Shown here in pieces: positions 1,792 to 35,576 of a stretch of DNA of 64,000 bases (positions within the stretch are counted from its first letter, which is position 1; each line of letters begins with the position of its first letter). The translations under genes were made by a program, and so were the position numbers. Origin of the DNA: Macrostomum lignano (lineage: Eukaryota). The stretch covers positions 542,755-606,754 of the forward strand of contig NIVC01000129.1 of the NCBI GenBank assembly GCA_002269645.1. The letters are read 5' to 3'. The notes beneath the pieces are model-generated. The model had not been told where the DNA came from and searched no databases. It was given only the letters and a program-made list of their open reading frames with translations.

Positions 1792-4700
1792 ATGACTGTG
1801 AAAAAATCTGCTCGATTTCTGCTTTGCTGGCTCGTCTGCTGCTGCTGCAGTTCGGTCTGCTTTGGCTACAGGTGGGACTACATCAAGATGCCGGACTTCA
1901 AGGGCACTGAGTACATCTTCCGCTACCCGCTCAAAGATGACTTGACACAGAGTGAATACGAACATGGGGAAAAGTACCAAATATTTGCTTCGGCCTGCTT
2001 TAATCTGACAGAAAACAGCCACAAAATCTTTGCTCCGCTTAACGACACGAGAGCGCTGGATGCGTTTACGAAATTGTTTGCCGAAAAGTGAGTCGCTTTC
2101 TATCATTTTTAGATTATAATTATTAGTATATTGAAGTTTTTGCTTGCTTAACTCGAAACATCGTATGAGATTATTTTTGGAAGACTCAAATCCACAAGTA
2201 GTATTTAAAGAACATTTTTATCTGGTAATACGAGCTTGTATTTTAGCCTGTGGTTCAACAGCAAATTATGGTCACGAAAGTCACAGGGTTTGTAGACAAC
2301 ATATTCTCAATACATTTTCCCTCTTGCCGAATATTTTAGTGCAACCGTCAAAACGATTCTGGACGACAAAACTCTCTGCACCAACTGGACCTACCGGCCC
2401 TATCACTATTCTGGAGGAGCCCCGGTGCCCCTGGCCTGGAACATGTTCGGGCCGACTTTCACCCCGCCAGCATCGCTGTGGGACGGCTCCTCTGCAGACA
2501 AGGCTGCAAATCTGATCACACTGAAGCGATTTGGAAGCATGTTTAAGTACTCTGCGGAGAAATCCAGCGTCGAAATGTACTACATGTGCGAATACTTTGC
2601 ACTGCGTGAGTTGAGTTCATTTATTTGCTGAAATTCTTTAGTACCTGTAAAATGTTTGCTCTAAGATTTCGTTGCCGAAGAAAAGAAAAAGTAGCTCTCA
2701 TCAAAAGATTAAATAAAAGCATCGTGATCCGCAAACTGACGGCCCCATTTTCAGCCAACAGCTCAGCTTCGGATACATATCTCTGCAGCCAGGCGACCTC
2801 TGTTGCCAGCTGGGACGGTGGCCCAACGGTCAACCAGAGCTACTGCGTGCACAGGCCGAAGCGAAAGCCGGATGACGATTACAAATCTGACTACTCTGGC
2901 TACACTCTGTTCTGCGAGAGAGGCGGCGGACGCCCAGCGCAGGCGGAGAGCGTGGAGAAGCGAATGAAGCTGTGGTTGGTTTCAAAAATGCGTACACTTA
3001 TTCCTATGTTGTTTCCATCGTGTCAGTACGATTATCTTTTGCCGACGAAACTGAAAAGGGGGTTTGTCATCTTGCTCCGACAATGGACGCGGTTTAATCG
3101 GGGGCGGGAGGCAGTTTCTTTGTCGGGTCTCTCCATTTGATCGGAGCTGTGTGTATAGTCCACAGACCATATAGAATATAGACCAGTAAAGTGAAGAAAA
3201 AAGTGGGCCATTTCCCCCCATAAGAAACTGTTCCCTCTCACCCACCCCAGCTCGATCGATATGTGGTACAGGGCGGGCCTCTTTTCCATAGTGCTCCTAT
3301 TGGACACATGCATTTGAGATATTTTTTTTCTTTTCTTTCGGTTCGGTTCGGCCAGACAATCGTACCCAAGGACTGCCATTGATTTCGGATTAGTTTCAGC
3401 ATGTGCGGAACGTCAAGAAAGGTTGACACTGATGTTTGGATCACATGGATGCGGAAATGAAGCATTAACATTGTCCCACGAACTTATCTTGGCACCGAGA
3501 GTTTCAATAGCCTTAATATTATGCTGCGTTCCGTCACACGTAAAAGATGTTGCGATAACACCAACCTGGTACAGCCGCTGGATGCACTCCTCAACAGCAG
3601 TAGCTAAAAATTCCCCATCAACGCCGTTGACTAAGAAGTAGCCTAAAGGCAGTTTCCAGTAGTTCTTCAGCCCAACAGCCATCAACACAAGTGCAGATGA
3701 TGCTTCCTGTTCGCTTACGTTGCCATCTCCCTTGTCGACAAAGCCAAGGAACCTGCCCTCGCAATCGCTCCATTCGACCATGGACTTCAGAGACATCTCG
3801 TCTGCTACAATGTTGCAGTAGTCAAAGGCTTGGCCATTGGCTGAGCTGCGGCGACGTGATAGCTCTTGAAATGCTTGGACGCAAAATCCTGGAAGGCATC
3901 GCACACTTGAGATCCATTTCCGTAAAGACGATGGATGCGGAAGCTGGAAAAACTTTCTCACGTATTCGTATGCCTTAGGACTGTAGTAGTGCAACGTTGA
4001 AGCAAATCGCCGAACTTCAGGGGGAAATTTTTTTATTCTCCTGTTTTTGGTTGGCACTAGACAGTTCAACAATGAATTTGATGACAGAAACTGCAGACGG
4101 GATGCTGCAGCTTCGTCAACAATATTGTTTACCTTAAGCGCTTTCAAAATATTAGTCAGTGACTTCGACCGCGCCCTCAGTCGCTGGTGCCTCTTGTTCA
4201 GAGCCCTGAATTTGCTGTACTTTTGAGTGATTGATTTACTCATGATCTCCAAGGCTCGTGAATTTTTCTTCGCGACCGAATGCGCAAATAAAAGCCGCTT
4301 GTACCTGCGCTTCAGATTCTTAAGCTCTCTTACTTTTACTTGATACGCCTCCTTGCTTACACAGTTGAAATGAGGATCCAGAACTGGTTCGTGGTCAGCT
4401 CCATCTACGTTGGCAGCGAGCTCATCAAGCGGGTTGAAGGATGCAGGCCGCGGCAGTTCGCGGTCCGGTTCACTGAGAAAGGCACTGAAATCGATTTCGG
4501 CAGCTGCAGAAGCAGATGCGGCAGTCATTCTCTTCCTCCTTTTTTGCGCAGGTTGCAAGTGACTTGGAAAGGCAGGAAAAATCGATGGAATCGCTCCTGG
4601 ATACAGCCGCCTTTTGCACATTTGCTGAGAGGCATTAAATTGCTCAACGAAGCACGATAGAGAGAAGTGCTCGGAGCAAATTCTTGATGACGATGACGGC

Positions 4701-7700
4701 TGAAAGCCTTCTCGACGGATTGCTGAGATCCATTTTTGCTTCAGCTCATCGTCTTTCGGAAAGGAGTGAAAGGACACTCCAGTTGTCAACGAGGACTTGT
4801 TTGAGCAGCCAAAAGCACAGCAATAGTTGCCACACTTTCTGGTGCTCTTCTCTTTTTTTGATACGCTAGAAGCAGGCTGCATTGATAAGAATGCTTGTTT
4901 GAGTTTTTTGCGGGATATTTTTGCAAGGAAATATTTATTTTGCCTCTCTGAGGTTTTAAAAGTCTTTATAATGAGTAAATTTCAAGCACTGGCCAGCTTT
5001 AAAAATGAGACAGCCCCATTTTTTGTACCACATATCGATCGAAGTGGGGCTTTGGGGGAAGGACCATTTTTTGCGTTGCTTTTTTGTCCCACAACGCGCC
5101 TGGGCAGGCCCCCGAGATTCGCAGTCTATATTCTATATGGTCTGTGGTATAGTCATCAAAATAGCTTTTATCTATATCTTTTGCTCATATCCAGTTAAGA
5201 GCTATATAACATGGACAACTAAATTATACTACTGATCCTAATTTTCCTTGTACTACTGGTACCTTACTAAGATAGGGATACACGGAGATAGGATTTCCAT
5301 GATTCTGCATGATCCGACAGAGAAAGTGCCCCTCGGATAGGCCTTTAAAATATTTTCGGAACAGCTGAAATCGCCTTTACGCACTCGAGGGTTTTACCTG
5401 GTGTGAGAAAATATCAAAATAGAGATTTGAAAGCTTTTCGTTTCGCTCTCTATTCTACATTTTTTGCGTCGGATATACAGTTGTAGTAAGTAATAATACA
5501 TACATATTAATACTAATTAATAAATACTGTTTAATTTTTAGGATATTCGTCAACCAAACCGTCTTGCCAAGCGATTGGGTTCCAGACGAAAAACACCTGC
5601 TGCTGGCTCTGATGTTCGACACCGGCATGACCAACTGGCGCTACCAGTCCTTCTGCATCCCTGGAACTCCGTGCCGATCCAGCTTTAACAAGGAAATCCT
5701 TAGCCAGGATAAAACTAAGGGCCTCGTGGTAACTTACAAATGGCAGCACTCGTTTCCCAAGGAGGTCAAGGCAGAAGAATACGACAAAGACTGTCCAGTG
5801 CTATGCACAGGTACGGCTTGCAGATAGTAGCTGCTGCTAACACCACCAATAATGTTCCTACCCTAACCCTCTTCCAATAAACTGAATTCGCACGCATCGA
5901 AATCATTTGCAGCCATGACCTGCCCTAATCCGCACACTGATGACCAGCTGAATGAGAAGAATCTTATCTGCACCTCCTGGAACAGCAGTCGGACGGCAGC
6001 AGAGCTGCAACTCAGGAAGCTGCCATTTCAGCAGATTGAGTACACCTGTGTGCCGAATTTCGTCTTTCTCGGTGCGGAGAGCAACACCAGCATTGCCAGA
6101 CGATGCACCCAGGTAAATGATTTCTCGCTAAGTTTTATTCCGTTTCGCTTATCGCATGCGGACCATACAACCGATTTCGTTTCGTAGAAAGCAATTTAAA
6201 ATTTAAAATTCATTTAAAAGCTAATAGAAACGAAAAACGCAAACTAAACACAGTCTGCGTCATTCAGGAATTCTATCGATTTCATACCCAACCACACAGT
6301 TTGCAAACGCAAACGGGCTTCAAATTTCATGAAACCGCATTTACGATGGCATCCGATTGCTAAATGAATAAGGCCAAGGCGCCAAACTTGTTGATTAAAA
6401 CATGCGTAGGACAAAAAGGAAGCCAATTTTTGAATCATGGGAACAGATTAGGACGGAACGGGACGCTACGACTCGTAAATCGGCCATGGCGACCTGTACA
6501 GAACTTGAACTGAAGTATTCGACCTTAAGTGCTGAATTTGTTTACACTTAGAAGTCAAAAAACGTTTTGCAGCTGTACCGTACGCCTGAATAATGATCAA
6601 TAGTCTATAGGACTACGCAGCAATAATTTTCGTATGCATGCACATCGATTTTCGGAAACAGGACGCCGTGTGGGGCAGTGGAATCCCGACCTGCGTGTCG
6701 CGGCCGTGCACTCCGATGCCCGTCTATCCGAATGACACAGCCGTCATCACAAGCTACACCTTTAAAGGAGTTACCTACAGTTATTCTGACGGTCAGTTGC
6801 TGACGCAGCTGCTTTCGAATGGAACTTTCCGGCCGGGAGACAATATCCAGATATCCTGTAAGCCTGACCTTATGGGCTCCAGCCAAACCGCCTCCTGCAT
6901 GTCTGGCGGCAGCTGGAGCCCCGTCACCATGGACTGCAGCCCTGGATACTGCGGTGGCGTCTCCGTCCCTCCGACGGTGGCCAACGCACAATCAAATGCG
7001 ACCTTCGGAAACACATCTTGGGAGGGCGCCAGCCTCGCCTTTACCTGCAACACAAACTACAGCGTCGGCGGCCTACCCAACGGATCTGTCAGCTTCGTCA
7101 TCAGCTGCATCAACAGCAGCTGGACCTCGTTCGCCCACCTGAACTGCCGACCGACCGCCTGCTCGAGTCTGCCGCCGGGACTGGGAAACTCCAGCCTGTA
7201 CAGCTCGCTGAACCTCGAGCAGGAGCTGCAGACGGGTCTGCCGGCTTCCGGAGTGCAGGTCGACGACAGCCTCAGCTACGAGTGTCGGCCTGGCTTCGTT
7301 CGGACGACGCAGAACCGGCGATTGAGCATCTTCTGCAGGCTGGGAGACCGCTGGGAGCCGGACGTTCCCGGTCCGTGCCAGCTGCTCAACTGCTCACAGC
7401 CGGATGCCATCGTGCTGCAGCCTCAGGCCGCTCGCATGACCGTCATCAATGCATCGTTCAACTTTGCTAACAGCTCGCACCTGCCCTACACAAGTTTGGT
7501 GCGGCTGAGCTGCGAGGAGCCGTACTTTGCCATGCCGGGCAGCAGCGAGCTGGCCGTGTGCGGACTGTCAGACGGAGATCCGCCTGCGGCAGTGTGGCGC
7601 AGCGTCGGCTCAAATGTGGCCTTCAGCTGCCGCAGTAAGCAGCTTGTCATTATTGCTTCTAATCCGAAACTTGGAGTGGTGGCTTGCAAAAGAATGTACA

Positions 7701-8617
7701 CCACTCTGGGCAATCTAGTTATAGATACCGGTATATAAATTTTGTATTGAACTGCCGTCTTTTTCAATAACAAGCCATCTCCGAATCTTTTGTAGAGCAC
7801 TGCAACAACAGTCTCTTGGCGCAGCTGGTGGGATTCGGACTCGTCGACTTCCCCACCAGCTCCTACACGGATCCCGACCGAGTTGCCAACGTCACCTGCC
7901 TTTCGAACGCCTTCGCTCCGCTGGCGGCGAACGTCAGTCTACAGAGCGACTCGCAGTTCCTCCTACAGGCGGTCTGCACCGCCGGAGACTGGACGGTGCT
8001 CAACCAGCTGCTGCTGCCGACATCGGAGACTCTGTGCCAGCCGAAGCCCTGTCTGTTGCCTACCAACCTGACTCGATCTACAGCCGTGCCCAGCAACAAC
8101 TTGGGAAACGTGACTACGGGAGACGGTCAGGTGTACCTGCCAGTGAACAGCACCGTGGAAGTGAAGTGCTGGCCAAACAGCCGTTTTGTGGACGCGTACG
8201 CCAGCTCTTGGACGGCGACATGCGAACTCGGTTTGTCAATTTGTTCATATTATATTTTGTTTGTTTAGCAATTCAGGCTTACGCTTCATGAAGCTTATGA
8301 TAAAATGCGAATTGAGATTTGGTGCAATGGCGATATACCAGGCCCTCAGTGGAGCTCCGGTGGCTCCATGAACTGCCAGCCGATCGCCTGTCCGGACAGC
8401 CAATTTGGTGCCGGGATCGATCCCAGCGTGCTTGTCGGTCCTCTGAACGCCACAACTATGACTGGCGCGGTGGCTGGCCCGTTTTTTATCGGAGACCAGG
8501 TGGCGTTCGTGTGTCGGGAGAACGCCTCGTCTTCGGGTTATGTACGCCTCAACTGCACAGCGGGACCGAATTTCACAGGTGTCTGGCAGCCAAATATTGG
8601 CCCGCCGTATTGCCCAG
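1792..8617 (+). CDS. Gene A: secreted protein with N-terminal C-type-lectin-like domain and multiple Sushi/CCP-like repeats; 8 exons, about 978 codons, 3' end unresolved
   Basis: Exons 1792-2087, 2340-2605, 2755-2974, 5542-5810, 5913-6112, 6662-7634, 7796-8230, 8342-8617 all have GT-AG boundaries and join in frame. Signal-peptide-like start (MTVKKSARFLLCWLVCCCCSSVCFG), CTL-like end (YMCEY), repeated Sushi-like motifs (YECRPGF...C...W.P....C). Same exon structure in paralog B. Confidence 0.8.
3161..5146 (-). mobile_element. P-element/THAP9-family DNA transposon, internally deleted, in intron 3 of gene A
   Basis: Perfect 23-bp TIRs CACAGACCATATAGAATATAGAC (3161-3183, 5124-5146); 8-bp TSD GTATAGTC (3153-3160, 5147-5154); 19-bp subterminal inverted repeats (3252-3270, 5024-5042); THAP-transposase ORF inside. 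Confidence 0.95.
3413..4882 (-). pseudogene. C-terminally truncated THAP-domain P-element transposase (489 aa)
   Basis: THAP zinc finger (CCAFGC...FHSFPKD...KW...ICSEHF...AIPSIF), coiled coil, STLHYYSPKAYEYVR motif, first two catalytic Asp motifs (ADEM, TCDG). ORF stops just after FPHPCDP, lacking the remainder of the catalytic region. Confidence 0.9.
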
Positions 8618-11104
8618 GTGAGAATTTTCCTGCTGAGACATACTGACAGAGCAAAGTGTTATGGAAATTATGGAAAGCAAGCAATGAAGGTAAGTAATAA
8701 ACTGGTAAGTTCAGGCAAAGCAACCCATTTAAGTGTACTCGTAGTCTTTTTACTTCTGGTTGGTATTCGAGGGAACATTGTTAGTGTAGATATGTGGGTA
8801 GTTAGTTTCGACGTCATCTTCTCTTGAATTTTTCACCTTCAATTTCAAAATGTCTTCTTCAAATAATGACTGGCTAATTTTTAACGCTCACGTTAGTTGT
8901 GCTTCCTTTAATTACGCTCAAAGTTTTATGAAAATGAAGAATGTCTACAGACTCGACGGACTTACACAACAACAAAGCCCCCAGATTCGCACAAGATTCG
9001 GATCGAGACCAACATTTAATGAGAATAACAAAGTGGAATTTTTAACCAACTACTGACATCAACAGCTAATTAAAGGAATGATTTACTATCTCTTGAATAC
9101 AATTCTAGTGTATGAGCAATGAAATCCTGTGTCAAGAAAAACACTTTGAAGTGAAGTTTTAATTGATACGTATAATATAGCATAAGCTTGGCTTTTTGCA
9201 TCGTTTTGTCAATTCTAAAACTGACTACCTTGAATTCTTTACGAACTTGACTGCACTGGCTTTAAGCATTCATTTTTTAAACTTTATTACCTGCTCTGCA
9301 GCAAGAGCACACTTTGTATGTTTTATGCATGTGCAATAGCTCGTACTTTTATTTGATGAATGGATATTGTGATGGATCACAAGCCGTATCATTTACCTCT
9401 TGGTGTGCAATCCATATTCTAAGAGTTCCCTCTAACGCATGCTTGCAAGCAGATAATTATTTTTATTCAATAACTGCAATTCGTTCGTTTATCTTACGCA
9501 CGAAAACTCTTATCCACATTGCATTTACCTGTTTGGAAAAACAGTTTGCAGTTTTTTTGTATCCAACATCTTTACTCTTGAAAAACTTTGTTATAAATTT
9601 TGCACCTGGTCTACGTTAACCAGAGTTGTGGCCTGAAATATTGCGAAAATTTTCCTCCCGCGTCAACAAGCACTCCAGCTCCGGCTCTCAATGATTCTCG
9701 AAAGCCATCATAACAGAATTGTTGCATTTTTAGCTATCTGTAAAGCTACACTTTGACTTTGAGTTTAGCTGAGACGATTTTCATTTTTTGGGACATTTAT
9801 ATTTAAAATATTTTCTGTATTCAGAATTTCCACTTCAACTCCAAAATGTGCTATGAAATTTACAATATACTGTTAATTCCTATCAAAAATGACAATATCC
9901 AATTCGGCACAGAGAAATTGATTAAAACAAAAATTCATTTCTCTACACATTTTGATTGTCTCAACGATACTGCGTATTGCTATGCTGTCATTGATATTCC
10001 GCAATATCATTTCTCTTTAGTGCAGGACCACTTAGCTAAATTAGCTTTTAGACTCTATGCAAATGTCCTATCAAAACTTTGCGGACGATAAAGCAACATA
10101 TCCGGGCCGTATGAATTTATTAACAGCTAGATTTGCAGGACTCAAGCTGTACTGCATTCACAGTAGATTGTAAATGAATAACAGTACCTCTTTGCCCGTT
10201 TTGGGGAGAAGCAAGCAAATTCCATTGTTATTGAAAAGCCTGCAGAGCCCCAGAGCATACAGGCATTCTGCTGTTGGGTCAGTGCATACAGAGAAAATAG
10301 CAGTTCAAAATGAAGCCGACTCCCCATCCCTAAAAGACTGCTGATCAAACTCAGCTCAGGCTTCTCTACTCTCAGCCGCGGAGTTCTAAACTAAGTAATC
10401 TGGATCGAAATCAGATTATTTTGTCAAATGTGACAAATTCAAAGCATTTTCCGTCAAAATTAAATACCAATTTTCCCAGATTCAGAATGTATAACACTCT
10501 ACATATAGCTTAATTATTTTGTTGGCTAATCAGACTTCAAAATCCTTCTCGGAAAAAGCAAAATTTAACATATATTCAAGGTATATGGCTAACCTGTGAG
10601 GTCACTACTATAGCTAAGTTGCTGTCTAGTAAAGTCTAGAAGATGGACGTTCCAGAGAAAAGCTATAAATGTACTGAAAACAATCAGCGCATGGTATCGT
10701 AAACCACTACGCTCCACCGAAACGCCTATTATTACAATAGCCTCACCAGAGCAATATATAGCCCGCCTTTAGCTGTTTGCTTAAGTAGTTTTTTTTAACT
10801 TAGAATTTATAACCACTTACTCGTAGCTATGACTAGCCACCCATGGTTGAATTAGTGTAAACTGCACAGCCATTTAATCTAAATACATGTATAAAATTGC
10901 AATTTGAATACTTGTGCTGGTGAATAGAGGCAGAAAATATCATGCTAAAAAGCATGCAACCCGCAGGTATTCGGGCCTCCATTTGTAAATGTAATTATAG
11001 ACTTATCTGATTCCGTTTGACAACAGATTGAATCACAGATTTAGTCCCAATTTATTTCAGTTCCATTTTACAGCTCGGTTAGGAATTATATCAGCAATCA
11101 GCAA

Positions 11105-11365
11105 TCAGCTGCAGTAGCATCGAAACAGTCTCCGGTACCTCTGGCAGATGCCGTCCCGACCCACCCTGCCGCAGCCGTTCAGTCTGGAGCACGCCTCCTG
11201 GCTCTGGAATTGGTAGGCCAGCCGCATATCGCACAGGTCGCCCCAGACCGCGGCCGACATCTCCGAGTGGCCCTCGACCGGGCTTTTCACCAGTGCAGCG
11301 CAAGCGATGGCAGCTACTATGAGTAGCGTTGTAGAGCTGCACTGATCGACATAGCAATGAGCCAT
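11105..11365 (-). CDS. Secreted 6-cysteine defensin-like peptide (86-aa precursor)
   Basis: Hydrophobic signal (LLIVAAIACAALV...VEG), mature part with C-x13-C-x5-C-x8-C-x8-C-x-C, gamma-core-like GICx8C, Arg-rich C-terminus. GC-rich island in AT-rich DNA; splice acceptor (TTTTTACGCAG) 5 nt before the ATG. Confidence 0.7.
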   Translation of the reverse strand: MAHCYVDQCSSTTLLIVAAIACAALVKSPVEGHSEMSAAVWGDLCDMRLAYQFQSQEACSRLNGCGRVGRDGICQRYRRLFRCYCS

Positions 11366-11684
11366 TCGGACTGCGTAAAAAAACTAACAACTATTCGTAA
11401 CAATGTTTGATGAATTCGAAAAATATACTTTTAGCTTAAATTCTTTGTTCTAATAAGCGAAATTGGCGGTAGGTATTTTTAAAAAGCTTTTTCAGGCCAT
11501 AGATAATATTTTACGAACAATATTATATGTACGAGTAAAGCATGTTGTAGACAAGGGCTAAACCATTAATAATCCATAGAAATAAAGACTTTCCGTGACA
11601 ATATTTGCGTTCTCCAGGATTTTATTTGGTAATATTCAATAATATCCCGCAAAGTCTTAATGTCTATGGTTTATACGAGAATAC

Positions 11685-11771
11685 ACATGCCTTTTTCGGG
11701 AGTTATTTTCATAAATCCCTCGGGCCTCAGGCCCTCGTGATTTATACAAATAACTCCCTCAAAAGGCATGT
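11685..11771. repeat. Imperfect ~87-bp palindrome with central GGGCC-TCA-GGCCC hairpin, probably part of a small non-autonomous element
   Basis: Arms ACATGCCTTTTTCGGGAGTTATTTTCATAAATC and GATTTATACAAATAACTCCCTCAAAAGGCATGT are near-complementary. Confidence 0.7.
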
Positions 11772-11800
11772 TTAATCTGATACTTATTATTATCTTTGAT

Positions 11801-13783
11801 GAGGACGCACTTTTTCCCAAATCCCGCGCTAGCACATGGGCTCTAAACTTACTTGCCTACTAACAGTGGGCAAGGGGCATTTTTATCTTTTTTCTGCGAA
11901 TAGTCATAGAATCTATACTAGATATAATGTCGGGTCATACTAGTAGTCATAATAACATAGGCCTAGCTTTTTGGGTCATAAATCATCGCTTCCGAAGTTG
12001 GTCTGACAGCCACCTGTGCCTCATTCAGTGTTGAGACGGGCGCCAGATGGTCTGAGAGGATGCGGGCGGTAGCTTTTTTCTCATCATTTTGACAGGCCAT
12101 CAAGATTTATGAGGTCGGAGCCTATTGTTCGGATTCACTCAAGCGTGTGACAGCTTTGACAGCTATGCGTTTTACCCCTAAAAGTACCTTGGGATTAGCG
12201 ATTAGCAATTTCTCTTCATTATCTTCACTTTCTATTTAATAAGAGCTTTCTAATGTATATTTTTTCATTAATTTCTGTCAATCCTACGCGAAAAGTCATA
12301 AATCATTTTGTTGCGATTTTGAGTGATTTATGGCCGCACCTGTCATTTTTTACGACCCTGTGGGAACTGATAGGATCTCTCGGTCACGTGATTCTGGGTA
12401 GCAACAAGCTTAGCCAATCAGAAAATTCGACGCTCATTTTAACAAAACGGCTCAGCCAATCAGAATCGACGTGTTCCATTATAACAAACTGCGGTCCAGT
12501 TGGCGGCTATTTAAACCGGAGTTTTTGGCCCGCTCGGATCTCAACCTCCTGGGACCTTAGCCTAGCTTGAGACATCCCGGAGCGCGACCGTCGTTTCTTG
12601 ATCCCCGGATTGCGACTTCCCCCCATCATCATCAAGGACGAATCCCCCGGTCGTCAGCAGCGAACATCAAGCGAAGATCATCACCTGCTAGCTATCAGCG
12701 AAGACTGTGTCAGCATCATCCCGAGTCTACAGCTACAGAGCATCAAGCCGATTCGGTCACTGTGGATTACCTGGTCTCCGGCTGTTGAGTTTCTGATTGG
12801 TTGGGTGAGAGGCTACCTAGACTTGCTTGATTGGGTGATTCCCTATCTGTCCCCTGTTTCAGTAGCTGGATTAGGCGCACACTTTTGCTCATTTTGTTCA
12901 GTAGTGCTGTTACTGAGGCAGAAATCACTTAATAATACTGCTAGTAGTCTGAAACTCCAATTCGATCTGAAGTGTGAAGTGATCTAAGGAGAAGGTTAAA
13001 TCTAACAGTTATTTTTATCGGTTTTATTTCTTTGTTCGCCGATGGCTCAGATGAGTAGCTAAGCTAGTAGGCGCCGGTCACAGTGGACCAATGGCAAGGC
13101 GGTTCTCAGTCGATCAATCAATCAAATCAGTGAGTAAAACTGCCAGAAGTGCAGAATCGGCGCCAGAGATGTACTTTGTGCACTCTAGGTTCGCCAAGCG
13201 GCTTGGGTGATGAATCATGCGAGGTCTCTGAAGTTCGAGTTAGTCTATCATCAGCGCTATGAGAGGCTAGTTGGCGCGTTGAAGGCCAAAAGTACATATC
13301 TTCGTATTTAGCAATGTAATAGTACATGTAGCTACCCCATAGACTCGCCACTGCAAGAATCCCCTGCACAAGTCCCCTCTGTACCTGCATGGCCAATGCG
13401 ATCTAGTCCCAGCAGTGTCCCTTATCATCGGCTATGACTTCGAGATTGACAGCAAAAAGACACTAGTTGGCAGGTAAGTGCAAAGCCCCTTCTAGTCGGA
13501 AGCCCGATTTCGAGAGTCCCGGTGTGGTGAGCCAGGACGCACGGGCTGGTGGCAGCGAGTTAGCTTAGTCTGCGGATTAGCTAATTTCTACCTTCAAAAT
13601 TCTCCCTGCTTGTCTCTCGCTGTCCCTCTCTTAGCTATAGGACCTAGACTGATCGCCACACGACCAAGCTACCATGGGGCTGACCATCTGACAGGAGTGG
13701 GGGGCCAGGACTCTAAGTGATTTGTTTCTAAGCCTGAGGCCCGAAGGCTTCCTCACAAGGGGCCTGAAAGGTCGAAACCCATC
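11801..13783 (+). repeat. Dispersed non-coding repeat family, copy 1 (~2 kb), class unknown
   Basis: Aligns by eye to 32394-30490 (reverse) and 27600-28621; sharp 5' boundary GAGGACGCAC shared with copy 3. Confidence 0.85.
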
Positions 13784-18379: not shown

Positions 18380-19465
18380 ATGGCAGAGATTGAAAGGAAC
18401 GACGTTGGCCAAAATTCGTCAGCGAATTTCTCCTTGACGGAGCAGCTGCCGTCCTGGCAGACTGGCTACGAAAAATTTCACACCTACGTATTTTCCTGGC
18501 TTTACCCGTTGTTGATGTCGCTGGGAGTCTGGGGCAACGCCAGCTGCCTGCTGGTGCTGCTGCGGCACCCGAAGTGCTTCCCGTTCTCCGTGCGGCTCTG
18601 CATGCTCACCACCTGCTGCGTGGACCTCCTGCTGGTAGGAGGAAAATCGGTCACGCACTACCTCTCGCCCAGCGTCCTCGGAGAAACTTTTGGCGTACCA
18701 AACTACCGGACGCAGTCCAACTACCCGGTGTGCGTGGCCTACTTCCTGGCCACCCTGTGGCTGCTGCACGGAAGCCCCTTCCTGCGCATGGGGTTCTGCC
18801 TGCACTCGCTGGTCGTCACCTTGGCGCCCATGCGGCAGCGCAGTCTGCTGCGTCGGCGAAACATCGTCGCCTGGCAGGCGCTGCTGCTGCTGCTCAGCCT
18901 CCTGCCCTGCATCCGGGTGGCCAACACCTTCTGGAGTCTGGAGAAGGACAGGTGCGTGTTCCGGCAGAACACCTGGATCGAGCTGGCCTACCGGCTGTAT
19001 ACGGTGTTCGCCGCTCGCGTGCTGGTGTTTGCACTTCTCCTCGCCTCCCTGGCCGTCATCCTGGCCAGCCTGAGACGCAGCCAGCGCAACGTCCACGGCT
19101 CCATCGCATCTGGCCGCGGCGAGAACAGCTTCGTTCATCCTGCGGCTGCCGCGGCCTCCGCCCAGACTCGAATCTTCGCGTCTACCAGCCTAATCTTCAT
19201 CGCCTGCGAAGCGCCGTTTGCACTGATGAAACTACTGGAACATTTAGAGATTCTGGAGTGTACGGGCAATATGCACCTGCTTCTGGTGCTGCTGAACCAC
19301 CTGGTGTACCTGAACCCGGCTCTGAACTGGATGCCCTACCTGATCGGGCGAAAGTTCCGCTGCCGCTATCGGGCAATGGTCTGCTTCTGCAAGCAGCCGG
19401 AGGGTGACAACGGAAATCAGCTGGAACTGACCCCGGCAACTTATAAAGCCCTGAGAACTGATTGA
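18380..19465 (+). CDS. Intronless class A (rhodopsin-like) GPCR, peptide-receptor-like, 361 aa
   Basis: Seven hydrophobic segments; TM1 GN, TM2 Asp, Cys atop TM3 and in ECL2, TM6 FIACEAP, TM7 NPALNWMPY; TTTTAG acceptor 2 nt before the ATG. Confidence 0.85.
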   Translation: MAEIERNDVGQNSSANFSLTEQLPSWQTGYEKFHTYVFSWLYPLLMSLGVWGNASCLLVLLRHPKCFPFSVRLCMLTTCCVDLLLVGGKSVTHYLSPSVLGETFGVPNYRTQSNYPVCVAYFLATLWLLHGSPFLRMGFCLHSLVVTLAPMRQRSLLRRRNIVAWQALLLLLSLLPCIRVANTFWSLEKDRCVFRQNTWIELAYRLYTVFAARVLVFALLLASLAVILASLRRSQRNVHGSIASGRGENSFVHPAAAAASAQTRIFASTSLIFIACEAPFALMKLLEHLEILECTGNMHLLLVLLNHLVYLNPALNWMPYLIGRKFRCRYRAMVCFCKQPEGDNGNQLELTPATYKALRTD

Positions 19466-19707
19466 ATTGTGTGACGCAAACGAAAACAACTTTTCTCTCT
19501 GTTATTTTTTTAACATGACTAATCCCTTGGGGATGTCCCTAAAAAGCTTAAACCGCACGAAAAGCCCTCGTACGGTCGCACGGCATCGGACGGCATCGCA
19601 CAGTCCCACGCATTATAATGGAGCTGCACCGCCCCTTATTCCTATCCTTGATCAATTTTTTGGAAAATAATTACCCACTTCGCAGGCTCGCACACTAACA
19701 GCGCACC

Positions 19708-20258
<551 letters not shown>

Positions 20259-21152
20259 TGTACTTTTTCCATCTGTTTAAAATATTACCGAATTTGTGCC
20301 TGGGTTTCAGAGTCGCGTGCAACTCAAAACTAATAAGCCTATACCCAAATAATAACCAGATTTTAAAAGCAGGATTCCCAAACAGTGTTTTAACAAGAGA
20401 TTGGATTAATGAATTTCAATGTCCAGACTCGCAATCGGATTCAAACTGAATTATTTCTGAAAGTTTCGAAGGCTATTCGAGCGAGTGGATAGCTTTTTCT
20501 GAAATTTTAGTGAAATAACGCACTACTTTCTAGCTAACAATTAAGTAGTACTTATGACATTTCATACGATTTTTCCTTTTAAGAGAATTTTGGCGGGATT
20601 TACTAAATTCATCGCTCTTTCATCTCACTGATTTGAAAATCTAATCGATTTCTTAAACTCAAATCGCTGCTAAAATGGAAGAACAAGTTTCATGTGTCAA
20701 TTTCGCAGACTTTTAGCATAGCACTGAATAAGCTATTCTTAACTCCAGTTAGTATCGAAGAGCGTACGGCTACCCAACTCCGATTGGTCCGAAAATTGAT
20801 TTTTCTTTCATCCCCCCGTCGGACCGGTTTTTTCTAGCTGGGCTGGCTGGACTCCCAGCTCCCCCCACTCCCCTGGCGGAGTGAGTACGCAGGCTGGCAC
20901 AGTCTGTACTGTACGCTGTACAGCCGTTGCCAAGCGTGCACTGCCCGCCGCTCTGCCCCGCTGCCACAAACCCATACCCCCAAGACCAGCAGTTTTGTCC
21001 CTAATCTTTACACTGCCTGATCCCTTTTCCTCTCTTCCAGCCAATATCCCCGTCTCCCCGTCTCCACTCGCTGGCCTCGTGTTTCGTGCTCTCGCTCCCT
21101 CAAAAAGTTTGGCGAGCGGGGGATCAGGGATCCGCCTAAGATTAATGCTTAA

Positions 21153-22492: not shown

Positions 22493-25400
22493 TCACAGCT
22501 GCTCCAGCGCATCGATGAACTCGGCCATGAGGTGGAAGCCGCCAAAGTCAAAGTGTTTTTCTACAGCGGTGTAGAAGGCGAGCGGCGCCCTCCGACGCAT
22601 GTCTAGGAGAACCGCCAGGGTCACTCCCGTCAGCTGCCGGCCTCGAAGCCAGCCGATCAGCGCCGCTCCATCGTTCCGCTTCGCCAGCCAGGCTTCAATG
22701 TCGGCTCGAGTCCACGCTCGGACATCCACGGATTTCTCCGACTTGCCAATCGGTGGCAGCGGCTGCGGCGACGGCGGCGTCGGCATGTCGTGCTCGCGTC
22801 TGTAGCGACCGTCTGACTCGACCTTCGTCGCGCTCTTGGCCGTTGTTTTCTGCTGCTGCTGCTGCACAGCCGGCAAAGCAGCGTCTGTCGAATCCAGATC
22901 GAGAAACTTTTGTACAGCAGCCACGAGCTCCGGGAATTTCGCCTCGAACGGATATTTGCCTGAGAAGTCGTGGTACAGCCCGGCGCCGAGGATGATGCCC
23001 AGCCAACCGGTTGGCTTGTAGCCGCGCTCCATCAGCAGCGGGATCAGCTTCTTGCTGTTTCTGTGCGCGTACTCGGCCTCTGGGAACCGGGGGAAGGGGG
23101 TTAATAAGCAAGTTGTTAAGATCTTCGATGCTCTACACCTGCAACCCCTTTCTTTTGGTTCTGGAGTGGCTCAGGAACTCATAAGCCGACAAGGAAGCTT
23201 TGGGGATGTTAGACTGACTGGGCTTTGACAGCGGCAGCGCATCCGTGGCCTTTGCCTTCTGCCTTGGTCGTGTTGGGCACAGATTTTTTCTCTAAACGCG
23301 TACCTGTAACTGTAAATGATCAGGTTCTCCTGGCTACGGATCTGGGGAAAAGGTGCGTTACTCTGATCTTTAACAGTATGCAGACAATATTTAGGCCCAG
23401 AAGACAGCCTCCTTGTTTTAGGGTGTGCTGTACACTCTCTGCCCCCACATTATTCATGACTCACTCCATTGCTTAGACTTGTTTAAAAATTCTAGACCCA
23501 TCACGCATCGATTCACCCCCACCCCAAATTTCGACTAATAAATATATTGAGCGTGGTCAACACGGATTATCAGGACCAGAACACCTTCCAGCTACATGCG
23601 GACGGACCAGAGCCCTGCTGCTACTGTACTATGCAGCTTAGTCAAAGTCTGGCCGTTTCTTAAACGCATGGTGGCCTAGAACGCTTCGCGCTTAGATTCT
23701 ATAGATAAGTGTTCCCCTATACTTACCCAGTCGGCAGTTGTTGCTGTCCTTGTATTTTCGCGACATGCACATCAATACTATTGAGGAGTTTTCCACAGCC
23801 TCCGCCATCGCTTCTAGAGTTGAGCCGTCTTTCATCTGCTCGTAATCGATCCAAACCTGTTGAAAATTTGTGAAATCTTGAAATGTAAGCTTTCTATCTT
23901 AAAATTTTGTGAGCATGTAATTAAATGGACCCTGTGTATGATGCATCATACTTCACATATGATTAAGTACATGACTTGATATTCTGCTACCATTCTCAAT
24001 TCCCATTTAGATCGTCAAAAGCGATACTGGCTAAGCTGACGGGTAGACCAGCCGATAGTATGATAGTAGTACATTGAGAGTAGGAAGACATGAATGATGG
24101 GGCGTTTCAAATAGCCATAATAATATGTAAATAGTCGGGACATTCTTCTCAACAAAACATCATTATTCCCAGATTCCTCTCCACCATTGAAGTGTAGCTC
24201 TTAAACAAAGTACATCGCATAAGAGCAACCAACTCTCTTACCTTGATTCTGTGCTGCTTCAACTGGTCCCGGATCCTTGCCACGGTCTCCTTAGACTCGT
24301 GCTGGTAGCTAATCATCACGTGAAAGCCGTTGCCAGCTGCTGTACTCGTTGCCAGGTTTTCAGTGACGGCACTGGCGTCTGCGGCTTCTCCGGGCTTCGG
24401 CTTTGGCTTGGGCACCGCGGAGGCCTTCCTGGCGGAGTGATTCGTCATTGAGTCTGTCGATTCCAGCTTGAACAGCAGGCCTTTCAGCGAGGCCATGTTG
24501 GACCACTGTGACTGTCCAGCTAGCGACGTCAGCTGGGACGCAAACTCGCGATGGACTTGCTCCTGCACAGCCGGGTTGAAACTGAGAGTGAAGAGAACAT
24601 TCACTGCGGCGCCAATTTCATCGGGCTTGCCACCGTCAAGGAGGCGATGGACTACTGGAAGAATTTTCAGCTCCACCAGCAGCTCCTTGTTAATGTCGTT
24701 CAGGGCAAGCCGATTTACGCCTGAAGGGTTCAACAAATCTTGAATTAACTTGAACCATTCATGTTTACGCCGAAAAAATTTCAGAAGCTTACGCTGACCC
24801 CAGGCGGAACTTACACTTCGTCAACTCCACCGTGTGATAGCCAAGGCATCGCCGATTTTTACTATCAATGGACCGGTTAAGGGTTCTGATCAGCAGTGAG
24901 ATGGACTCCTTCTGTCCCAGATAGAATTCCGCTTTACTCTCGTCCAGCGCAAAGCAGACAAGCAGAAGAGCGGAGAACTGGACGAGGTTTGTAGCAGAAT
25001 TTTTAGTGCATGTTTAAGTTATCAGCGGAATCAATTCCAGAATGAGGCTAGTATCAGTACTTCTATTTAGAATCCCTACTTACGGAAATTCTCTCGTCTT
25101 TGGACCTTAGAAGCGGCTTGACTGGCTCAACAAAATCGTAGGCTGACAGGCAAGCGTCAGTCTCCGTGTCCAGCTTGAAGTAGGCATTGTACACAATGTC
25201 CATCAGCCGTCGGATGCAGAGCCCCGACTCTGTGCCCAGCTGACCGGCTAAAAAAAGCGGCGTCCAGTTGCTGAACACCCTCAGGCAGCAGTCGCGACAG
25301 AAGACCTCCGAGGCGGCCAGAGCGCGCACCAAGAGTACACTGCAGTCTGAGAAGTTGTGCAGAGCACGCGTCAGCACTGAAAGCGCAGTCATGTCCTCGG

Positions 25401-25743
25401 GCGCCGCCTCCAGGTCACCCTTAGTCGCGTGCCGGCCGATGATGGCCTCCATGAAAAGCAGCAGCCGGCGAAAGACTTCGCCATTTTCGGCTGCAACAAG
25501 TGATTCCGCCAAAGCTTGACAGGCAAGATTGCGCTCGACCTCGTCAGGAAACGGGCGCGCCGTTTCGGTATAGCTGAAGTAGAGCTCCTTCAGCAAGGGA
25601 ATGAGCTCCTTGAGCTGCTGCCGCTGGAGCTTGTCAGACAGTCGGGAGCAAATTCTGTTCATGGTAGCTCGGCACGCATCGAGGCGAGCCGGAAGCGGCG
25701 AGGTCGCAGACTGTCCGGAAGCCATCAAGTTCAGTTTATGCAT
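22493..25743 (-). CDS. ARM-repeat / TIR / SAM-like domain protein, 5 exons, about 672 aa
   Basis: Exons 25743-25084, 24977-24815, 24720-24242, 23856-23727, 23079-22493 splice in frame at GT-AG sites. TIR motifs FHVMISYQH, VWIDYEQM...STLEAMAEAVENS...MSRKY..S.NCRLEAEYA...LIPL...GWLG; helical ARM-like N-terminus; SAM-like C-terminus (WTRADIEAWL...LTG..L). The start could be 25725 instead. Confidence 0.85.
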
Positions 25744-27599: not shown

Positions 27600-28621
27600 G
27601 TCCTCTGATTGGTTTGGTGAGAGGCTCTCTTGACCTGCTTAACTGGGTGCACCCTTTGTCTGACCCCTTCCTAGGTAGTCTGATAGGATTTGCACTTTTG
27701 CTTACTTCTTTTTGTGTGCCAATCTCGAGGCAGAAGTGTCAGTTAAGATTAAAATTAGCCATTTGCTCTAACTCAATCTAAATTGTTTAGGATTGCGGAT
27801 TAAGTGAGAAAGTTAAATCCGTAAGTTAAAGACTTGGCGTTTTCATTCTTTTTCGCAATGCCAGCTGAGATGAGCGGCTATATCTAGAGGCAGAGGTCAC
27901 GGTGGACCGGAAGTGACACAGTTCCCAGTCAATCAGACAATCTAAGAAATCATTATGTTAAGCATGCAAATTAAGAGCCAGACTGGCGCTTTGGCGCGGT
28001 CACAGGCAGTTAAGCGGCTAAAGTAAGTTAAACATTGGTCTAAAGATCTCCGAAAGTAACAATGCATCTACATCATCTCTATCTGTCGACGTGTTAACAC
28101 ATTTAATGCCAAAAGCGTGCAGTTACGTGTACTTATACATGTACTTCTGTGAATTTGGTGATGAAATAGTACATTTAGTAGTGTATAAAGGCTCGCCAGC
28201 GCAAGAACCCCCTGAAGAAGTCCTCTCTGTCCCTGCATGGCCAATGCGATCTTAGTCCCAGCCGCGTCTCTTCTATTCGGCTATGACTTCGAGATTTAGA
28301 CAGCTAAAAGACACTAGATGGCAGGTAAGTGCAGTACTCCTCTAGTCGGAAGTCCGATTTCGATAGCTCCGGTTTGGTGAGCCGGGGCGCACGGACTGGT
28401 GGCAGCGAGTTAGTTAATCCGTGGGTTAGCTAATTTCTACCTTTCAAATTCTCCCTGCTTGTCTCTCGCTGTCTTCTCCTAGCTATAGGACCTTGCTGCT
28501 CGCCCACAATCTAGCTACCACGGGGCTGACCATCTGACAGGAGTGAGAGGCCAGAGCTCTCAGTGATTCATTTCTGAGTTCTGAGGCCCGAAGCTACAGG
28601 CTTAAAAAGGCCGAGCCCATC
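27600..28621 (+). repeat. Dispersed non-coding repeat family, copy 2 (3' half only)
   Basis: Homologous to about 12790-13783. Confidence 0.8.
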
Positions 28622-32394: not shown

Positions 32395-33184
32395 TGCACT
32401 TGATTCATAATATCAATTTCAATCGAAGATAACTTCAATTGCCTTCAGTTGCAGATGGACTTTGTCGAGTGTAGTTGCCACTTGCCGACCTTGAGCATCA
32501 GGAATTCCCGATTTCGGACCCGACCCTGGTTGACGCAGGATAACACAGCTGTTAAGCAAATATAAGGAAAAAGCAGGTTAGTTAGAGGTTTTATATGGGT
32601 CAAACAGAAATTAGAAGCTGGTGTCATCTGCTTGACCTTCTGATTCTGCTTGACTTTCTAACTCATAAATCAATAATATGATCTCATGAATTATATGACC
32701 CACCACTGATTTTATCTACCACTGATCGGATCCACCCATGCTGTGATCTATCACTGATGTGATGTACCGACTGATTTGACGCCATGACAAACTTGAAACT
32801 GACTGATATGACCTCTTGGCTGATGTACGAGCTAATGCCATGATTGATATAAATTCATGACTGATGTGACCCTTCTGGCATATTGTAACCCTAAACGATG
32901 AATTGTAACTCACCAACAACAGCCCTGGTCCGATAATCCGCATGGATTTGTATCGACGTTTATTTGGCCAACGTTGACAGGAATCGTTGCAGACATTTTT
33001 TATTGTAAATTTCTTGATTTGTTATTATTTGGGAGGCCGATTGTTATACGAGTAAAGACCATGTAGAATAAAGTCTTTATTTAGCTAGTATATAGTGATT
33101 TTATTCGGTAGTACCTCTCGGTAGTACCCAAACAGAAAGCATGAGTATGAAAAGTACTACCTTATCACATTTGCGAAACTAATT

Positions 33185-33796
33185 GGGAGCATGAGAATTG
33201 CCCGCCGAGAATTGCCCGCCGAGAATTGCCCGCCGAGAATTTCCCGCCGAGAATTGCCCGCCGAGAATTGCCCGCCGAGAATTGCCCGCCGAGATTTGCC
33301 CGCCGAGAATTGCCCGCCGAGAATTGCCCGCCGAGAATTGCCCGCCGAGATTTGCCCGCTGAGATTTGCCCGCCGAGAATTGCCCGCTGAGATTTGCCCG
33401 CGAGTGAATTGCCCTCAGAGATTTTCCCGCCGATAATTGCCCGCTGAGATTTGCCCGCGAGTGAATTGCCCGCCGAGGTTCGCCCGCAAAGCTTTTTTCC
33501 TGCAGCGCATTTGGCCACGCGGCAGATTTTGTCTGCATTGCCTCCCCAATGCTTACTAATTTTTAATAAAGAGGTACATGTATTCCCGATCAAAACGTTT
33601 TGATAGTAACTGCATAGCTCGTATTAAATACATATTTTTTGGGAGGGGTGGGGGCAGCGCAGACAGAATCTACGCTCGTAGCTGCCAAATGCGCTGCAGG
33701 AAAAAAGCAAACCTCTGCGGGAAAAAAACTCGGCGGGGCAAATCTCAGCGGGCAATTCTCGGCGGGCAAATCTCGGCGGGCAAATCTCATGGACCC
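33185..33796. mobile_element. Foldback/MITE-like element with 14-bp tandem repeats (GAGAATTGCCCGCC) in its inverted arms
   Basis: About 20 units at 33190-33480, about 4-5 inverted units at 33733-33791, plus a unique inner inverted repeat (33490-33547 vs 33650-33709). No TSD found. Confidence 0.75.
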
Positions 33797-34836
33797 GCAG
33801 AGTTACGACGTACAGTCTAAAATATACATTGCATCAGTATTATTTAAAACGATTTCTATCGGGTCCTACATCAAAATTAGTTCCTACAAATGCGACCTGT
33901 ACACATCACTACTATTTTCCGCTGTGCTCAAGGTAGTGCCTCGTATTCAGAGACGCTGGAAGAACATTATCGTTCATATGCACGTACATTGTACTGTGCA
34001 CTGTATTTACTGTATTTTATTCAGAAAACCAGAACGCACTGCCTATTCTCAAGCCATTGTCTGCAGGACTTCCCACAATGCTTGCTAGCGTACTGCTAAT
34101 TTTACTTTCGTTAATTTATGGTGCTCTTTTTCATTGATTTGCAGCAGAAAAGCAAAGATTTTGGATATCAAATGTTTCTTGTGGAGTTAATATTTGCCCC
34201 TGGAGGGTTTGCACATGTTTGTGAAGCTACCATATCTGAAACAGAAAATGAAAGCAGCAAAAAGATTTTAGCTCGTACCAGTGCACATTCAATTACAGTT
34301 TGTTTTCTGCTCATTGGTCTTCGCCCTTCCCTATCAACCTCCAATTTCTTTGTAGCTACATACGAAACATTTACTCACTAGCTACATTAGTTACATTGAC
34401 AAATAATTTATAAATTCGCTTTATTCACAGCTTTCTCTCGTTTCAAACAATATGCCTGACGGTGCAGTGCACCTTGGTGTGCGAAACGCGTCGTAACAAC
34501 CTACATGTTGATTTTTGGCTTTCTCTTTATTTAACTTGCTAAGCGAGCCACTTTACCGGGATTTACATGAAATTCTGCAACTGCCCCCACCCAAGATTAA
34601 GCTTTTGAAAATTCAAGTAAGTGATTGGTTAATTCATTGAAATTACACTAAACATTCAAGCTTATCCAGCGTAGTATAATTTTATTCTTTTTCAATCTTC
34701 AGTACCTTTGTAATCCTCTGAAATTTGCATTTCATCTCATCTCTAATTGTAGCATTTTTTATCTTACAGTATATGTACAACTAATTACAGAAATCTCGAA
34801 GTGTACATGTTCATATCGCACATACGCTCGAACAAC

Positions 34837-35154
34837 ATGCTGACGCAACTCACGCTGGACCAGCTGCACGACGCCTTCAAGATTGGCGACGAGCGACTCA
34901 CCAATGCGGCACTTGACAAACAGGCCTGTGCCCTTGACTTGTTGCGCCGTTGGCGACTCCAGCTGGCAGGCCACTTCATCTGTGCCCAGCCTCACTGCTC
35001 ACCGCCTGCGCAGAAGGTGCTTCTGCTGAGGCGGCAGGTGCCCTACCAGCGATGGCAGGCGTGTATTTGGCGCTTCGTCAGCTGCCTGCTCGCTGATTCT
35101 GGCGTCGCAGACAAGTCGACGACGCGGTCAATTTTCTCGCCCAAGTCTGTGTGA
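34837..35154 (+). CDS. Orphan ORF, 105 aa, unknown function
   Basis: GC-rich island with exon-like codon usage in AT-rich DNA; upstream acceptors; the minus-strand frames across it contain stops. No recognised domain. Confidence 0.35.
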   Translation: MLTQLTLDQLHDAFKIGDERLTNAALDKQACALDLLRRWRLQLAGHFICAQPHCSPPAQKVLLLRRQVPYQRWQACIWRFVSCLLADSGVADKSTTRSIFSPKSV

Positions 35155-35576
35155 CGCTGGTATCCTTTTTATGACCTATCGACTGCATGTTTTTTAAGTT
35201 GCTATGGATCGATTATAAGGCAGAAGACTACTCATAATGAGCACAGCCGTGTCTCATTCTTATAGAATCAGGATTCAATTTTTGCAAAGTCAAATCATCG
35301 TTGCATTTTGTAACAGTGGCCTGTTATATTTAAAATATTAACTCCAATAATATTGATACATCCGTAATACCTCTATTCAAAACTACGCGTACAAAGTGTA
35401 ACTGTCATGTCAAGAGCAGAAAACCAACATCATCATGAAAATATTAAATCGACTTACAGTTAAAAACACTTACCTCGATTTCTTCTCCATCTCAACTACC
35501 ATAAATGTACCATCCCAGTTTTATCTAAAAGTACAGCTGACAAGAATGACAAAAACAGAAAAGACAAAAAATTTAC

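Follow-up and report, generated by a model that had tools for sequence, protein, structure and literature searches.

A small gene of the flatworm Macrostomum lignano probably encodes an orphan secreted cysteine-rich peptide, for which defensin membership is not supported

Introduction

Does an open reading frame (ORF) of 86 codons in the flatworm Macrostomum lignano encode a defensin-like antimicrobial peptide (AMP)? The ORF lies on the minus strand at 11105-11365 of a 64,000-nucleotide stretch of contig NIVC01000129.1 (positions 542,755 to 606,754; hereafter the window, whose numbering is used throughout). A first-pass annotation of the window described the product as a candidate antimicrobial peptide with a non-canonical defensin cysteine array, and counted the gene among those so small that annotation often misses them. 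To our knowledge, flatworms have so far yielded no characterised cysteine-rich antimicrobial peptide. Homology searches have reported flatworms to be without defensins, big defensins and myticalins (PMC10414684). We find that the observation on the sequence is correct, that the gene is probably real, and that its product is probably an orphan peptide, secreted and rich in disulfides. We find no support for the defensin framing, and an antimicrobial role would be a guess.

Results

The 86-codon ORF has the coding signature of host genes

The minus-strand segment reads without interruption from the start ATG (11365-11363) to the stop TGA (11107-11105) over 86 codons plus the stop, and its conceptual translation is MAHCYVDQCSSTTLLIVAAIACAALVKSPVEGHSEMSAAVWGDLCDMRLAYQFQSQEACSRLNGCGRVGRDGICQRYRRLFRCYCS. 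The source assembly, GCA_002269645.1, is M. lignano Mlig_3_7, and its annotation of contig NIVC01000129.1 records a gene, BOX15_Mlig021545g1, with exactly this product of 86 amino acids (aa), so the expectation that annotation had missed the gene was wrong for this assembly. The gene and the base composition over it are as follows (GC3, GC content at third codon positions).

11105-11365, minus strand: complete coding sequence (CDS) of BOX15_Mlig021545g1 (ORF listing, annotation record, codon usage, GC3)
11100-11350, no strand: sharp GC island coinciding with the CDS (GC in 100-bp windows)

The deposited Mlig_3_7 annotation rests on genome-guided RNA-seq transcripts whose coding sequences were called by TransDecoder (PMC5730564), and the 86-aa record fits such a transcript-based, TransDecoder-derived origin. 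Since intact ORFs of 361 aa and 489 aa in the same window have no annotation record in GCA_002269645.1, the annotation calls are not naive ORF calls. The 86-aa protein is apparently missing from the other M. lignano proteome (UniProt A0A1I8 series), which holds the neighbouring Sushi-repeat gene at 99% identity.

Codon usage was scored in each frame as codon log-odds, using a codon table built from nine long host ORFs in the window, and dinucleotide shuffles (n=5000) served as the reference. GC content at the three codon positions of the 86-aa frame was 0.55, 0.53 and 0.75 (GC3 0.747), compared with a GC3 of 0.56-0.79 in the nine host ORFs and 0.50 in a P-element/THAP transposase ORF. The frame scored +0.23 bits per codon, compared with 0.16-0.36 in the host ORFs, and the remaining five frames over the locus all had negative codon scores. 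Its total codon score of +22.3 was reached in 0/5000 shuffles, for which the best of six frames averaged -9.8 +/- 5.1, while its GC3 contrast was reached in 10/5000. A relaxed form of the cysteine framework described below had no occurrence in 30 whole-window shuffles. The 100-bp windows over the CDS had 0.63 and 0.66 GC, compared with 0.29-0.40 on either side; the CDS as a whole had 0.609 GC and its 500-bp flanks 0.37 and 0.34, with host ORFs in the window ranging from 0.48 to 0.62.

A second frame, of 99 aa, is also open on the same strand (11091-11390). With a GC3 of 0.50, a strongly negative codon score and a translation dominated by Arg, Gly and Pro-rich stretches ruled unlike host protein, it was rejected as the coding frame. 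Taken together, codon usage is what sets the 86-aa ORF apart from annotation noise, because the annotation also takes in microsatellite translations and the AMP predictors also favour these and Kunitz inhibitors. We consider it likely that BOX15_Mlig021545g1 is a real protein-coding gene with a single coding exon.

The precursor has a hydrophobic leader and a six-cysteine array

We took the signal peptide and its cleavage site from a published run of SignalP 4.1 (PMC10414684), which divides the precursor as follows.

11270-11365, minus strand: signal peptide, residues 1-32, MAHCYVDQCSSTTLLIVAAIACAALVKSPVEG (hydrophobicity, published SignalP 4.1 result)
11108-11269, minus strand: predicted mature peptide, residues 33-86 (published cleavage site, composition)
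11108-11152, minus strand: Arg- and aromatic-rich C-terminal segment GICQRYRRLFRCYCS, residues 72-86 (motif search, mature-only model)

The leader that the first-pass annotation had read as a signal peptide has a hydrophobic core of 15 residues (12-26) with a Kyte-Doolittle 9-residue maximum of 3.19 at residue 18, and it carries cysteines at residues 4, 9 and 22; the published SignalP 4.1 result is also positive. The predicted mature peptide starts at H33 and has 54 aa, a mass of ~6.26 kDa and an isoelectric point of 8.7, and the propeptide-site (PP) column is empty for BOX15_Mlig021545g1 in S5 File of PMC10414684. Translation and motif search reproduced the reported array of six mature cysteines exactly: they stand at residues 45, 59, 65, 74, 83 and 85, giving C-x13-C-x5-C-x8-C-x8-C-x-C and allowing three possible disulfides.

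The further details of the first-pass description also held. Its count of 8 Arg against 5 Asp/Glu is correct for the peptide that starts at H33, the published SignalP 4.1 cleavage product. The N-terminal mature part (33-58) is acidic (charge -3.2) and the C-terminal part (59-86) basic (charge +5.7; 7 Arg, 1 Asp), which bears out the description of a strongly cationic C-terminal half. The terminal CxC is CYC at 83-85 and the GxC is GIC at 72-74; G72-I-C74-x8-C83 fits the gamma-core formula, although this formula is loose, which limits the weight of the match. The C-x5-C said to replace the defensin C-x3-C is C59-x5-C65, and no C-x3-C occurs anywhere in the mature peptide. A secreted, disulfide-stabilised peptide fits these features because the precursor combines a leader with an even number of mature cysteines, an acidic N-terminal part and a basic, Arg- and aromatic-rich tail that is predicted to form a hairpin. 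On this basis, we regard secretion of the product as likely.

The antimicrobial candidate is already in print

The 86-aa protein is identical to the BOX15_Mlig021545g1 entry in S5 File of Irvine et al. 2023 (PMC10414684), where it is flatworm AMP-like peptide (fAMP-LP) no. 500. These authors called a protein AMP-like if it had <=150 aa, was positive in SignalP 4.1, gave a peptide of 10-100 aa and was scored as antimicrobial by >50% of 11 predictors (PMC10414684). The published values place our protein within this definition: SP = Y (SignalP 4.1), a 54-aa peptide HSEM...CYCS, and a Prediction % of 81.8, that is 9/11 algorithms (PMC10414684). The entry was set aside at the 'Ungrouped' step for having no sequelog, and none of the cysteine-rich candidates was tested in that study (PMC10414684). 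BOX15_Mlig021545g1 is therefore not merely similar to the AMP-like peptides of Irvine et al. 2023, which are mostly untested cysteine-rich orphans, but literally one of them; it differs from many of the M. lignano groups in their table, which have a second copy, in having none in either assembly. Its status as an antimicrobial candidate is thus already in print as a computational call, and the gene was neither missed by annotation nor newly flagged here.

Searches found no relative of the peptide

Pfam returned 0 families at E <= 10, with no match to a defensin, macin or toxin profile, and the best matches among PDB sequences (E 1.4-1.7) were all to unrelated proteins. Among 5.8 billion clusters, a word-indexed search retrieved the query protein alone. 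A phmmer search of 1.84 billion representatives returned, apart from the query, just one match: the spurious repeat protein P0002 (E = 3.7e-10). We rejected P0002, the translation of a tandem repeat (595 aa, period 85 aa), because it owes its score to a single ~25-bit match to the signal/pro region that recurs six times and never reaches the cysteine domain. The case illustrates how repeat proteins inflate HMMER whole-sequence scores.

Within the species, the best of 12 sampled M. lignano cysteine-rich peptides reached 2.6 bits against the candidate in a small-database comparison. M. lignano peptide group 58, found by probing with 4-mers, shares CxRLxxC and RCYC with it and was rejected, as BLASTP aligned the 4-mer only (E = 0.33) and phmmer gave -1.3 bits. 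A tblastn search for paralogues in the window returned the gene itself, all other matches spanning 9-16 residues at E > 0.1, and scans of the window with a framework regular expression and for small secreted cysteine-rich ORFs revealed no second gene.

We calibrated the database with the neighbouring Sushi-repeat ORF, which matched M. lignano UniProt proteins at 99% and 93% identity and had four hits at E <= 1e-10, all of them M. lignano proteins. Since the Sushi ORF finds its counterparts there, the proteome of the other assembly is present in the database yet lacks the 86-aa protein. As judged by these sequence comparisons, neither of the annotated M. lignano protein sets contains a paralogue of the peptide; other Macrostomum species may have orthologues. 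Conservation of the cysteine pattern in relatives, which the first-pass annotation had named as a test, found no footing, as no relative emerged from the Pfam, PDB, phmmer or window searches.

The peptide departs from the defensin framework

Trans-defensins (big defensins and beta-defensin-like peptides) have an adjacent CC doublet at the C-terminal end of their framework. The framework of the candidate ends in C-x-C instead, and its mature peptide contains no CC. The framework of the cysteine-stabilised alpha-beta (CS-alpha-beta) defensins is Cys1...Cys2X3Cys3...Cys4...Cys5X1Cys6, of which CX3C and CXC are invariant and fold-determining (PMC5234102). The number and order of the six cysteines and the GXC at C4 fit this framework, as does the invariant Cys5-X1-Cys6 pair (C83-Y-C85), but the C2-C3 spacing does not, the pair equivalent to the invariant Cys2-X3-Cys3 being C59-x5-C65. 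Because a defining feature, CX3C, was thus tested and failed, CS-alpha-beta membership is not supported.

The predicted fold gave a divided answer. Both AlphaFold models were single-sequence predictions made with no alignment. The full-length model has three helices at a predicted local distance difference test (pLDDT) score of 62.5; its pairing of the C-terminal strand with the beginning of the signal peptide is artefactual. The mature-only model (mean pLDDT 63) has a strand at 51-53, a helix at 56-61 and strands at 72-77 and 80-85. It places C59 in the helix, C65 outside it, and C74 and C83/C85 on the hairpin. Its block-mean pLDDT is 65-79 over the C-terminal 39 residues, with 68 for mature residues 41-50 and 79 for 51-59. 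Foldseek against the PDB returned nothing significant and no defensin (best E = 6.3, template modelling (TM) score 0.26). The elements of the mature-only model thus follow a defensin-like order at low confidence, and the full-length model is all-helical instead.

Published HMM (hidden Markov model) and BLAST searches with lophotrochozoan CS-alpha-beta peptides recovered none from flatworm proteomes, Mlig_3_7 included (PMC10414684). With CX3C absent and no profile, sequence or Foldseek match, the proposed link to the CS-alpha-beta defensins is not supported, and by its predicted sequence the BOX15_Mlig021545g1 peptide is not a canonical member of that family.

Other M. lignano peptides come nearer to it. 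Groups 60 and 61 and entry 504 of S5 File (PMC10414684) are secreted peptides with C-x3-C...C-x-C-x-C arrays. Judged by these arrays, they resemble the CS-alpha-beta motif pair more than the candidate does, to which they are unrelated, and a search for defensin-like folds in flatworms would better begin with them.

Elements flanking the gene

Upstream and downstream of the ORF, we noted the following elements.

11371-11383, minus strand: T7 run followed by ACGCAG (TTTTTTTACGCAG), resembling a 3' splice acceptor (sequence)
11384-11386, minus strand: in-frame TAG, seven codons upstream of the ATG (sequence)
11420-11427, minus strand: TATA-like TATATTTT, beginning 62 nt upstream of the ATG (sequence only)
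11462-11466, minus strand: CCAAT motif, beginning 101 nt upstream of the ATG (sequence only)
11051-11056, minus strand: AATAAA polyadenylation-signal match, 48 nt after the stop codon (sequence)

The acceptor-like TTTTTTTACGCAG ends 5 nt before the ATG. M. lignano acceptor motifs are CAG for cis-splicing and [T/C]TNCAG for trans-splicing (PMC8629364), and T7-ACGCAG at 11371-11383 matches the CAG part only; it looks like a candidate acceptor for cis-splicing or for spliced-leader trans-splicing. Trans-splicing at this site is mildly disfavoured, because the ATG at the end of the spliced leader, if joined at the 11371 CAG, would start an 18-codon ORF in a different frame. Since TAG at 11384-11386 is in frame, the 86-aa ORF has no further 5' extension within the exon. 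Alternatively to the acceptor reading, CCAAT and TATATTTT could form a candidate conventional promoter, with the caveat that TATA-like motifs are frequent by chance in AT-rich DNA. No other AATAAA occurs within 300 nt downstream of the stop, and an ATTAAA lies at 10878. An origin as a retrogene was rejected, as there is no poly(A) tract beyond AATAAA, and so was a structured RNA, as the Rfam hits at E <= 1 were all far below threshold and none lay over the ORF.

The surrounding window

The gene lies beside one arm of an inverted segmental duplication, whose blocks (2011-8524 and 40236-35667) have a patchy identity of 67-87% and carry the Sushi-repeat ORFs at 6638-7738 (plus strand) and 36845-37663 (minus strand); the UniProt M. 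lignano matches of 99% and 93% are to the first of these. The gap that bears the gene (8525-11800, 3276 bp) and the other gap (32395-35666, 3272 bp) are nearly equal in length with no detectable similarity, even at word size 7. A counterpart of the gene in the inverted duplicate was accordingly rejected, the GC islands of the other gap being a 42-bp tandem repeat and unrelated ORFs.

A repeat of ~2 kb is present in three copies (11801-13670, 32394-30490 and, partial, 28153-28593) at 83-84% identity, with 19-nt inverted repeats at 11714-11732 and 13732-13750; from these features it looks like a non-autonomous DNA transposon. We rejected the 11801-13670 block, taken as a bracket of the gene, as evidence of ancestry, since it is probably a transposon-like repeat: it has inverted termini of 19 nt and exists in a third copy. 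A 101-bp near-palindrome (11678-11778) lies directly upstream of the candidate gene, and Rfam gave only a far sub-threshold microRNA-precursor match on it.

Transposon-derived ORFs occur elsewhere in the window. The minus-strand ORF at 3413-4882 is intact (489 aa) and encodes an unannotated P-element-type transposase with THAP, P-element transposase helix-turn-helix and TNP-like RNase H domains. Non-long-terminal-repeat (non-LTR) retrotransposon ORF2-like frames with endonuclease, RVT_1 and RNase H domains lie in opposite orientation at 43003-46323 (minus) and 49018-51954 (plus), in a block from ~42 to 52 kb whose 2-kb windows have 54-61% GC. Microsatellite or tandem-repeat tracts with long pseudo-ORFs, for example (CLSV)n, occupy 19640-20320, 33165-33600, 60423-60923 and 62197-63224. 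Elsewhere in the M. lignano genome, comparable (CLSV)n translations have been annotated as proteins, and they scored 72.7% AMP-like (PMC10414684).

Two further loci stand out by their GC3. The plus-strand ORF at 18380-19465 is an intact, unannotated single-exon frame of 361 aa that shows strong coding periodicity (GC3 0.79), with several long hydrophobic stretches and no Pfam match, and it seems receptor-like by eye. Three consecutive GC3-rich ORFs (179, 195 and 226 aa) with no Pfam match lie on the minus strand at 22493-25743 and look like exons of one multi-exon host gene. This gene seems unannotated, because its 226-aa ORF (25063-25743) has no match at all in the 5.8-billion-cluster protein database.

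Discussion

We tentatively favour, at a little short of even confidence, the composite reading that BOX15_Mlig021545g1 is a real, secreted orphan cysteine-rich effector with host defence as its leading candidate role. The 86-aa precursor would enter the secretory pathway and lose its 32-residue signal peptide, leaving a 54-aa peptide, probably with three disulfides, that joins an acidic N-terminal part to the Arg- and aromatic-rich C-terminal segment. Its part in host defence would be extracellular, with the cationic, disulfide-braced C-terminal hairpin binding anionic microbial envelopes. Tachyplesin, arenicin and protegrin-type peptides are cationic disulfide-braced beta-hairpins of 17-25 aa that stand alone. 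By analogy with these, the last 15 residues of the candidate (GICQRYRRLFRCYCS) alternate Arg, aromatic residues and Cys, and a hairpin is predicted there; unlike them, this hairpin would be the tail of a 54-aa domain with an acidic other half. An antimicrobial function specifically, judged from these features, is doubtful.

Several findings weigh against this effector reading. An ATG-initiated ORF of at least 80 codons arises in 9% of dinucleotide shuffles of the GC island, so ORF length alone is not significant, and annotation alone is weak evidence, given that translated (CLSV)n microsatellites are 'proteins' in the same annotation (entries 497 and 498). The signal n-region is unusual in having no basic residue, one Asp and two Cys, and the mature peptide as a whole carries a net charge of only +2.8. 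The AMP predictors have little specificity: 1,501/7,684 (~20%) flatworm secreted peptides passed the AMP filter, whose authors caution against reliance on the scores; Kunitz-type inhibitors score 82-100% in the same table; and the (CLSV)n translations of entries 497 and 498 are signal-peptide-positive and 72.7% AMP-like (PMC10414684). The full-length and mature-only models are low in confidence and mutually contradictory. Since no homologue, window paralogue or counterpart in the duplicated segment was found, selection on the cysteine array cannot be shown, and the gene identifier is absent from a full-text literature search and from the available supplements of M. lignano expression papers.

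These same points lend substance to other explanations. A real secreted peptide with a non-immune role is possible if somewhat unlikely: it could be a lineage-specific product of glands, mucus or adhesion, serve reproduction (in seminal fluid or in connection with eggs) or act as a disulfide-rich signal. The AMP pipeline also flags many small secreted cysteine-rich or repetitive M. lignano peptides of unknown function, among them insulin-like peptides and neuropeptide precursors with hormone-activity gene ontology (GO) terms (groups 55 and 65); the mature peptide is weakly cationic and its N-terminal half, C45 included, is acidic; and orphan fast-evolving secreted proteins in the genus are often related to reproduction, a topic of PMC7336406 and PMC5977470. 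On the other hand, the peptide has no similarity to any hormone or toxin family in Pfam or the PDB, and its gene identifier is absent from the available supplements of a positional/reproductive-gene paper and a seminal-fluid screen, which is a weak argument as these tables may be incomplete. A classical prohormone is unlikely because the sole dibasic pair, RR (78-79), sits inside the cysteine-bounded hairpin, and no propeptide site is listed. We give a distinctly lower probability to a transcribed locus whose ORF is non-functional, whether TransDecoder called the ORF on a transcript that is non-coding or young, or the gene is newborn or decaying and its peptide does nothing. Besides the unremarkable length of the ORF and the open 99-aa frame, this explanation would account for a singleton where most sampled M. 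lignano peptide families are multicopy (g1, g2, g3, both assemblies) and for its absence from the other assembly's proteome, which has the Sushi neighbour at 99% identity; junk ORFs do occur in the same annotation, and the locus is repeat-rich and adjoins the transposon-like element of ~2 kb. It does not readily explain why host-like codon usage and GC3 periodicity are confined to this frame (0/5000 shuffles), why the GC island is as sharply bounded as host exons, or why the product has an ordered design of leader, even number of mature cysteines and segregated charge.

Least probable of all is a highly diverged cis-defensin (CS-alpha-beta) whose helix motif has widened from CX3C to CX5C, a very unlikely reading that overlaps with that of a host-defence effector. 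The likeness to CS-alpha-beta defensins extends to a small secreted precursor, six mature cysteines in the same order, a terminal CXC, a GXC on the preceding strand, the gamma-core match and a cationic C-terminal region, and in one low-confidence model to a possible beta-alpha-beta-beta order with C59 in the helix. There is also a precedent in 63 atypical Zymoseptoria defensin-like peptides (Wu, Gao and Zhu 2017, PMC5234102), which have a defensin-like cysteine order in an altered framework, possibly with a change of fold, and in which antimicrobial activity is uncertain or lost (PMC5234102). However, the Zymoseptoria peptides are tied to typical members by gene structure and precursor organisation (PMC5234102), whereas the candidate has no relatives at all, and no typical flatworm CS-alpha-beta peptide is known that could serve as an anchor, the phylum being reported without the family (PMC10414684). 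The invariant CX3C is replaced by C-x5-C, C65 lies outside the model helix, the full-length model is all-helical, a long acidic segment precedes C2, and no sequence, profile or Foldseek match to a defensin was found; groups 60 and 61 and entry 504, which fit CX3C...CXC better, are unrelated to the candidate. Going further, one could speculate that the peptide is a fold-shifted cis-defensin remnant in Platyhelminthes or the founder of a Macrostomum-specific three-disulfide antimicrobial scaffold, in either case microbicidal through its Arg-rich hairpin; we consider this quite improbable.

The present finding by itself adds little, as the gene is annotated, the AMP-like call is published, and orphan secreted cysteine-rich peptides are common in this genome. 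RNA interference by soaking works in M. lignano. The species is also amenable to transgenesis (PMC5730564). A validated host-defence peptide in M. lignano would open flatworm mucosal immunity to experiment, and if the C-x5-C array folds like a defensin, it would inform the question of how far that fold depends on CX3C.

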